A DNA stretch of 63,606 nucleotides, filler included, from Octopus bimaculoides (GCF_001194135.2; 5 parts of 4 records of this genome joined end to end with filler, not necessarily neighbours in it); one strand, 5' to 3'. Positions 28,434 through 29,801 are shown, numbered from the whole stretch's first letter. A program made the numbers and translations. The notes: generated by a model not told the origin, from the letters alone.

Positions 28434-28575
28434 TATCGCGACCATTGTCTTTCATATCATCACTCGTCACCACCTTATCTGTCCATACCGCAGCGTCAGA
28501 CGCCTTGAACAGCAACGACAACATCAACAATATGAAGCCAAGATGGAAGCTTCTATGTGATGTTACCAATCGCAT
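28434..28575 (-). CDS. Putative signal-peptide (first coding) exon: MRLVTSHRSFHLGFILLMLSLLFKASDA/AVWTDKVVTSDDMKDNGRD
   Basis: ataaaATG context; basic n-region, hydrophobic core, S-D-A cleavage pattern; donor GATA|gtaaga in phase 1, in frame with all EGF exons. The AG at 28581-28582 also permits a 147-bp in-frame internal exon, but it lacks a pyrimidine tract. Confidence 0.7.
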
Positions 28576-28637
28576 TTTATCTGTTATTGTTATCTGTCTT
28601 ATTTGTTTCGGCCTTTGGACTGTGGTTGGAGCTGGGT

Positions 28638-28945
28638 TGGTACTCCGTCGGTTGCGACGATGAGGGTTCCAGTTAACCCGATCAACAGAACCTGCTCGTG
28701 AAATTAACGTGCAAATAGTCGAGTACTCCACAGACACGCATGTCCTTAACGTAGTTCTCAGGGAGATTCAGCGTGACACAAAATATAATTTGAATTACAA
28801 GTACAATACATTTTTGCCAGCTGAGTGGGTTGGAGCGACGTGAAATAAAGTGTCTTGCTCAAGGACACAACGCGCCGCCGGTTTTCGAACTCACGACTTA
28901 AAGATCGTGAACCGAATACCCTAACCACTAAGCCACGTGCCTTCA
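28638..28945 (-). mobile_element. Family-C SINE, near full length, co-oriented with the EGF gene
   Basis: Reverse complement: tgaaggcacgTGGCTTAGTGGttagggta (A box), gtgaGTTCGAAAACC (B box), ttgtgtccttgagcaagacactttatttcacg...ggaaccctcatcgtcgcaaccgacggagt. Confidence 0.88.
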
Positions 28946-29039
28946 TGCTAGACCACCGCCTTGGAGGGTTTAATCGGTCAACTCAACCCCAGTATTTTAA
29001 TACCTAGTTTTAAGTCTGGTATTTGTGCTATCAAGGGAC

Positions 29040-29200
29040 GCATTACCTGGTGTTTAGAGCATTGCCCTTACGATCAGGACCGTGGTTTCAATACCTAGAC
29101 TGGGTAGTACGTTGTGTTCTTGAACAAAACTCATCTCAAGTTGCTCTCCGATCACTTTGACACCTGATACGTGGTATACCAATCACCTGTTCAGGTAACG
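29040..29200 (+). mobile_element. Family-C SINE fragment, head-to-head with the 28638-28945 copy
   Basis: tggtgtttagagcattg...tacgatc...ggtttcaatacc...cgttgtgttcttgaacaaaac. Confidence 0.65.
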
Positions 29201-29239
29201 TCGAGAGTGCTGGCGGGAGTGAACTAATATACAGCACAT

Positions 29240-29530
29240 GCATTGAGGTCGATGTGATCGACTATCTTCATCCCCACAAATTCCAGGCCTTGTGCCTATA
29301 GTAGAAAGGATAATTGATCTGACAGGATCGTTAGCACATCGGACAAAATACTTAACGGTATTTCTTCCAGCTTTACGTTTTGAGTTAAAAAATCCGCTGA
29401 ATTCCACTTTGCTTTTCATCTATTCAAGAACGATAAAATACATACCACCTAAGCACTGAGGTCGATGTAGTTGTCTGTCCCCTCTCCCCCAAAATTTCAG
29501 GCTTTGTGTCGATAGTAGAAAGAATAATTA
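29240..29530 (+). mobile_element. Family-B SINE 3' half followed head-to-tail by a second copy
   Basis: gaggtcgatgt...caggccttgtgcctatagtagaaagga, then gacaggatcgttagcac...aaaatttcaggctttgtgtcgatagtagaaaga. Confidence 0.75.
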
Positions 29531-29678
29531 AAGCGGAGAACAGATTGAATCCACCACCGGAGACTAAACAACAACCATAACGTGAAGTAACGAAGTCAGC
29601 GAGGAAAAGGATGCCTGTGTGTGTGTGATTAGAGACAGTAAGAAGAATAGTGAGGAGATAGTAAAGCTTATACGTCAC

Positions 29679-29801
29679 CTTTACATTGTGATCCATCAGC
29701 ATGCAGTTGATAGCCAGGCCTACAGGCACAACTAAACGATCCATCAGTGTTGACACAAGTGTGGGTACAGCCGCCGTTGTTTACCTCGCATTCATTTATA
29801 T
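29679..29801 (-). CDS. cbEGF exon, 5'-most visible: [41 protein letters not shown]
   Basis: Pyrimidine tract plus ccattgacag|AT ... AAAG|gtgacg, 123 bp, phase 1-1, intact; lies upstream of the signal-peptide exon. Confidence 0.92.

Follow-up and report, generated by a model that had tools for sequence, protein, structure and literature searches.

On the minus strand of one piece of the window (the whole stretch of DNA analysed, 63,606 nucleotides from Octopus bimaculoides), a six-frame scan and splice-site read-out identified 15 exons, each encoding a single EGF module and all of them in phase 1-1. Fourteen of the 15 are 123 bp long and one is 120 bp; 13 begin as ag/AT (the slash marks the exon border), two as ag/AC and one, E8, as ag/GG, and throughout there is one extra base before the GT of the donor. 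The most 5′ of these, a 123 bp cbEGF exon in phase 1-1 recognised by Pfam and its splice sites, occupies positions 29679–29801 and is referred to here as U. A candidate first coding exon, the signal exon, lies downstream of it at 28434–28575 and carries the sequence AAAATG, a predicted signal peptide and a phase-1 donor. The next exon, E1 (26395–26517, TDECLHNNGNCMQTC..., from the splice-site read-out), is the first EGF exon common to all the readings considered below, and its acceptor is the strongest of the EGF set (ttttcctttctgttttctag). Splice sites and Pfam together define the cbEGF exons E2 (24364–24486), E3 (23432–23554), E4 (22125–22247), E5 (21739–21861) and E6 (20891–21013), as well as the EGF exon E8 (18729–18851); splice sites define the cbEGF exons E7 (19593–19715), E9 (13335–13457), E10 (12267–12389), E11 (9885–10007), E12 (7084–7203, the 120 bp exon, one residue shorter than the others), E13 (3471–3593) and E14 (2007–2129). 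As E14 ends with a phase-1 donor, the gene runs past it and off the analysed piece.

At its other end the piece stops 276 bp upstream of U. It contains seven runs of N, 2,712 N in total (848–1434, 7639–7651, 9260–9390, 10424–11126, 13706–14145, 15932–16501 and 17853–18120), and every gap is flanked by AT, CA or ACAT microsatellites. Three of the seven lie inside the long intron between E8 and E9, so that an EGF exon could hide there. The stretch 18121–30077 is free of N runs, which places U and the signal exon on one assembled contig. The 5.3-kb E8–E9 intron also holds a transposon remnant, a 161-residue open frame at 17185–17667 (minus strand) in which the HTH_48 domain of Mos1/mariner transposases scores 47 bits (E = 2e-12). 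A second long frame, 264 residues from stop to stop with the text ...WIGRRG..., runs antisense to the gene at 8175–8966 (plus strand); it resembles the C-terminal part of a mariner/Tc1-type transposase, but had no Pfam match at E <= 0.001.

In the downstream model (E1–E14), Pfam reports 13 EGF_CA stretches against 14 of FXa_inhibition/cEGF. The N-terminal motif D/N-x-D/N-E/Q-C is present in 13 of the 14 exons, the exception being E8 (RKNTC...), which lacks the calcium-binding N-terminal motif. E8 comes after E7, whose donor (AAA/GTAAGA) is the only one among the EGF exons with A at −1, and in E12 the residues WLTQHC replace x-x-N-G-G-C; these two irregular modules could be landmarks for positional orthology. 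The polypyrimidine tract of E2 consists entirely of a (CTT)n microsatellite (24487–24590) that abuts the acceptor (tcttcttcttcttcttctag/AT).

The EGF subtype at the locus, GGC-x-x-C-x-N-x-x-GS-[FY]-x-C, is that of SCUBE, fibulin, MEGF6 and matrilin, a point of difference from LTBP-1L/1S. A SCUBE-type N-terminus consists of a signal peptide and a short linker followed by cbEGF modules. The locus and arrays of the SCUBE/MEGF6/fibulin type have the Pfam set EGF_CA, cEGF and FXa_inhibition in common, but unlike those proteins it shows no CUB, EMI, Sushi or GCC2/GCC3 domain within the piece. Database searches with the spliced 620-residue model returned only distant multi-EGF proteins, the best of them 38–47% identical and none above 1,085 residues in length; many are named fibrillin-like, SCUBE, fibulin or LTBP-like by their sources, their architectures vary, and no orthologue was identified among them. 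Judged by its modules, the gene is one for a cbEGF-array protein of SCUBE/fibulin/MEGF6-like EGF subtype, and because the matches are at most 47% identical and of varied architecture we assign it no more finely than that.

Full-length fibrillins were missing among these matches, so the protein index is apparently length-limited and a long gene model would be invisible there. With no match above ~1,100 residues in the index, absence from it is uninformative on expression, and the narrower searches should be read in that light. The signal exon joined to E1 (88 residues) had no match among 5.8 billion proteins, and U alone had fewer than three 5-residue words in common with any of the 5.8 billion. 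Against a library of 1.84 billion representatives the signal exon alone gave a single spurious match, to a tandem-repeat protein. Exact-ORF look-ups for the exons found no match, metagenome contigs contained no DNA match to them, and a full-text search of papers for the exon peptide strings found none.

The sequence-only reading had placed an intact cbEGF exon about 1.1 kb upstream of the signal exon, and so it is: U lies 1,103 bp from the ATG and scores above the Pfam cut-offs, with 43 bits against 27 for EGF_CA and 53 bits against 33.4 for FXa_inhibition; at E = 5.5e-11 it is certainly no chance match. It retains six cysteines, the DINEC motif, the Asn/aromatic hydroxylation/calcium consensus and both splice sites (acceptor ...cattgacag/AT, donor AAG/GTGACG). 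The acceptor tract is 59% pyrimidine, inside the 41–100% range of E1–E14 and below their average. Compared with each of E1–E14, U shows 53–67% nucleotide and 42–60% amino-acid identity, the same degree of resemblance that E1–E14 show to one another, and its similarity to the other exons ends at the exon borders in a self-BLAST. The possibility that U is a recent duplicate of a downstream exon was considered and is ruled out by the nucleotide identity. A long-dead orphan exon should have decayed, whereas U is intact though no recent copy; on these grounds it is probably maintained and expressed. As an internal phase 1-1 exon it requires a downstream phase-1 partner, and E1 would be the natural one. 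Splicing of U to E1 is in frame (CK-D-TDEC) and rebuilds the standard C-x-D-x-D-E-C linker, across an intron of 3,161 bp that is within the range of those between the other EGF exons (263–5,271 bp).

For the signal exon, the coordinates, the phase and a rule-based signal-peptide test all agree with the sequence-only reading, which had described it as an exon with AAAATG, a signal peptide and a phase-1 donor. The ATG is at 28575–28573 on the minus strand in the context ataAAAATGc, with A at −3, and the exon translates as MRLVTSHRSFHLGFILLMLSLLFKASDAAVWTDKVVTSDDMKDNGRD (47 residues) plus one extra base (A). The donor, ATA/GTAAGA, leaves the exon in phase 1, the one phase that fits the array. The rules ask for a start codon, a positive n-region, an h-region of 7–15 residues and small residues at −3 and −1, and by them the exon is predicted to encode a secretory signal peptide: an n-region MRLVTSHRSF with two arginines (R2 and R8), an h-region HLGFILLMLSLLF and a c-region KASDA/AV. 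The Leu-rich core, LGFILLMLSLLF, is 12–13 residues long with a mean Kyte-Doolittle hydropathy of 2.8; the cleavage motif S-D-A/A has small residues at −3 and −1 and is followed by a hydrophilic linker of 19 residues. No Pfam family matched the 47-residue peptide. On a donor matrix built from 14 EGF exons, which are few sites and make it over-fitted, so that percentiles are rough guides, the donor of U scores 6.6 (97th percentile among the GT sites of its strand) and that of the signal exon a moderate 4.7 (91st percentile, with A at −1); leave-one-out scores of the real EGF donors span 4.4–12.6. Upstream of the ATG the frame of the signal exon meets no stop for 54 codons and extends into SINE-derived sequence (28423–28737, minus strand). 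Directly 5′ of the ATG is an (ACAGATA)3 mini-repeat (28578–28598, minus strand) with two AGATAA (GATA-type) motifs, and a hydrophobic ORF runs antisense across the exon (28532, plus strand).

The interval between U and the ATG (28576–29678) consists mostly of old SINE copies, which self-BLAST places at 29218–29532, 29014–29146 and 28822–28946. The signal exon was also considered as part of a SINE: resemblance to other copies extends no further than the 120-nt head formed by the last of these, leaving 28576–28821 outside it. At least three SINE-like families, in both orientations and with copies 62–87% alike, populate the introns of the gene, with further copies at 29863–30066, 5622–5865, 9645–9849, 20240–20439, 10274–10395, 11544–11671, 3639–4182 and 23714–23930; ARAGORN called no tRNA genes, not even in the tRNA-like head that one family carries. 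The region 90 bp upstream of U borders on a (TAA)n tail. A search of 26000–30077 against Rfam gave solely sub-threshold microRNA-like matches, on CA/TG microsatellites. Positions 28400–29000 have the second-highest CpG density in the piece, with 20 CpG per 300 nt near the signal exon against a median of 7 and an observed/expected ratio of 1.0–1.2 against 0.71. This richness is SINE-derived and is also found at 3900–4400, another SINE region that is equally CpG-rich, so it is not specific to promoters and points only weakly to an internal one. No TATA box was seen by eye 5′ of the signal exon.

How, then, might U, the signal exon and the array be related? The sequence-only reading had proposed three in-frame arrangements, and the junctions bear this out: besides U to E1, the signal exon joins E1 in frame (GRD-N-TDEC), and U can join an exon that begins at 28580 (CK-D-KMRLV), just inside an AG at 28581–28582, which is present and in frame as described, reading DKMRLV.... 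The explanation we favour, tentatively and with confidence a little short of even, is a single long gene for a cbEGF array, in which an alternative first exon lies internally and bears its own signal peptide; for the signal exon itself, an ordinary alternative start at a second promoter is the most likely reading. The locus would be a long minus-strand gene for a secreted protein with two alternative 5′ ends. Transcripts starting further upstream, outside the piece, would include U and splice it (from the donor after 29679) to E1 (at the acceptor before 26517), passing over the signal exon for lack of a usable acceptor. A further promoter, inside the gene, would lie in the CpG-rich, SINE-derived stretch immediately 5′ of 28575 and give rise to a shorter mRNA, whose first coding exon, 28434–28575, would bring both the ATG and a cleavable signal peptide and would join E1 in phase 1. 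The short product would then be separately secreted, with ~19 unique residues ahead of 14 or more EGF modules.

Several features are consistent with this two-start arrangement. First exons have no acceptor, and the weak AG in front of the signal exon, with a pyrimidine content of 24%, fits an exon that longer transcripts skip. A signal-peptide exon with a phase-1 end, placed before phase 1-1 modules, is also the usual layout in exon shuffling. Both the junction of the internal first exon with the shared exons and its omission from the longer form keep the reading frame. An internal promoter with a long isoform that skips the signal exon was one of the three arrangements proposed at the outset and it is the best supported of them, through the maintenance of U and the linker and acceptor of E1; transcription of both exons, their membership in a single transcription unit and the existence of the promoter are all things that we infer.

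There are precedents for such an architecture. LTBP-1S has its own first exon and signal peptide, joined in frame to shared EGF exons, and the proposed short form would resemble it in having both within a longer unit, with an in-frame join. LTBP-1L and LTBP-1S are N-terminal variants of one EGF-rich matrix protein and arise from independent promoters (PMC2782160). Like the candidate locus, LTBP-1L/1S (and LTBP-4L/S) are extracellular proteins with arrays of cbEGF modules. Unlike LTBP, the Octopus bimaculoides locus has no TB/8-Cys domain in the 15 modules seen, and both of its forms are predictions from genomic sequence. The alpha/beta-neurexins make use of an internal promoter (PMC11909895). 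As proposed for the signal exon, this promoter is intronic and drives a first exon with a separate signal peptide and a short isoform-specific stretch, after which come shared exons. The neurexins differ in belonging to an unrelated family of membrane-anchored proteins with LNS domains, whereas the locus is a pure EGF array and its promoter is a putative one. By analogy, a two-start architecture would be of a kind already known from LTBP-1L/1S and the alpha/beta-neurexins, and to call the signal exon the most unusual gene-structure feature in the window, as the sequence-only reading did, overstates the case.

The original set of three arrangements, all frame-compatible, omits a fourth that has to be taken seriously, namely that the signal-peptide-like ORF is the chance product of an intronic (TTG)n run, with the real signal exon upstream of the piece and U spliced constitutively to E1. 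A degenerate (TTG)n run makes up the hydrophobic core (TRF; codons TTG TTG ATG TTG TCG TTG CTG TTC), with codons that match those of (TTG)n microsatellites at other places in the piece; runs of this kind are common in such microsatellite-rich DNA. Under loose rules the piece contains 31 signal-peptide-like ATG ORFs, mostly translations of microsatellites; 149 of the 1,746 GT sites score equal to or better than the moderate donor; and the candidate N-terminus is absent from the database proteins searched. Set against this, the candidate combines A at −3, a positive n-region, a Leu-rich core, agreement with the −3/−1 rule and a hydrophilic linker, and it lies on the right strand, in the right phase and on the 5′ side of the array. 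It is the only ORF on either strand of the piece that joins signal-peptide features to a usable phase-1 donor. An order-3 Markov null gives ~0.003–0.04 equally good signal-peptide ORFs with a phase-1 donor per 27 kb, and under 0.003–0.01 per 27 kb at the candidate's own stringency. Counts in real, microsatellite-rich sequence set an upper bound of ~0.1 such candidates per window, and since the whole window was scanned it is this per-window rate that applies. Overall, the expectation comes to roughly 0.003–0.1 such candidates per window. A signal-peptide ORF with an in-phase donor is thus unlikely to arise by chance, and the chance is not negligible because the core is a degenerate (TTG)n run and microsatellites translate into hydrophobic strings. 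Taken as an account of the whole locus, a chance ORF with constitutive splicing of U to E1 is unlikely in our judgement, yet the strongest of the alternatives to two starts.

A somewhat more doubtful explanation is that the signal exon is the sole real start and that U is no part of the transcript. U could then be the penultimate exon of an upstream tandem paralogue ending in a short, SINE-derived terminal exon; it could be an untranscribed relic of a partial duplication; or it could be misplaced, a small unique island that short-read assembly put between SINE copies. U does sit in a unique island of ~330 bp (29533–29862, from self-BLAST) with SINE copies on either side, in a gap-rich draft assembly. 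As to misplacement, U and the signal exon have no gap between them, and within the piece the SINE copies on either flank are no more than 62–84% alike; being old and distinct, they should assemble correctly. As to a relic, an old one would hardly be intact, and none of the exons in view is a recent source of U. A neighbouring paralogue had also been suggested by the sequence-only reading, which had seen no terminal exon between U and the signal exon. That argument is weak: although the 1,103-bp interval contains no AATAAA, candidate acceptors at 29295, 29223, 29209 and 29118 open phase-1 ORFs of 13–37 residues that end in a stop, with ATTAAA signals downstream of them at 29001 and 28974. Reading straight through the donor of U adds three further codons before a stop (GDV-stop). 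Against a neighbouring gene is the room available, as 1.1 kb of mostly SINE sequence must hold a terminal exon, a 3′ UTR, a polyA site, a spacer and a promoter.

A further variant, which retains the internal first exon, concerns its age. The signal exon would in this case be a newly born first exon: within a CpG-rich intron filled with SINE copies, the degenerate (TTG)n run would have gained a start codon, a phase-1 donor and a cleavage motif. Phase 1-1 EGF exons accept any phase-1 donor, which makes capture of the array possible, and such an exon could have captured it, so that a second protein, likewise secreted, split off from a giant EGF gene. We regard a newborn exon as improbable; if true, it would be a case of gene fission, or of the birth of an isoform, caught under way, in which both the promoter and the hydrophobic core came from repeats.

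Least credible, and in our view very improbable, is the suggestion that transcripts retain the signal exon internally, by way of the weak AG at 28581–28582 or of a somewhat better in-frame acceptor candidate at 28694, so as to place a hydrophobic and perhaps cleavable segment in the middle of the array: both junctions are in frame, the frame is open upstream of the ATG and the 28694 acceptor scores 4.2 on an intron-only acceptor matrix, but one junction in three would be in frame in any case, and the 28580 acceptor has 24% pyrimidines at −20 to −4, against 41–100% for the 14 downstream EGF acceptors, and sits in the purine-rich (ACAGATA)3 mini-repeat (TRF). The uncharged stretch is 15 residues long (S9–F23), too short for a membrane span; fifteen residues is the length of a signal peptide, while a membrane span requires roughly 20. 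A signal anchor or transmembrane segment calls for an uncharged stretch of at least ~19 residues together with a usable acceptor, and the signal exon has neither. An internal signal sequence following an EGF domain that is already translocated would moreover have no obvious function.

Whichever of these readings is correct (two starts, a chance ORF or a misplaced exon), the biology would be of a known kind. If the two-start reading is false, the locus is an annotation trap, set by a chance ORF or a misplaced exon. If two starts are indeed used, the gene would yield two or more secreted proteins with different N-terminal EGF modules, which matters for annotating the very long, repetitive EGF genes of this draft genome, where automated models often truncate or fuse such arrays. 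The locus would then also provide a clean case of phase 1-1 modules allowing a new or alternative signal-peptide exon to plug into an array.
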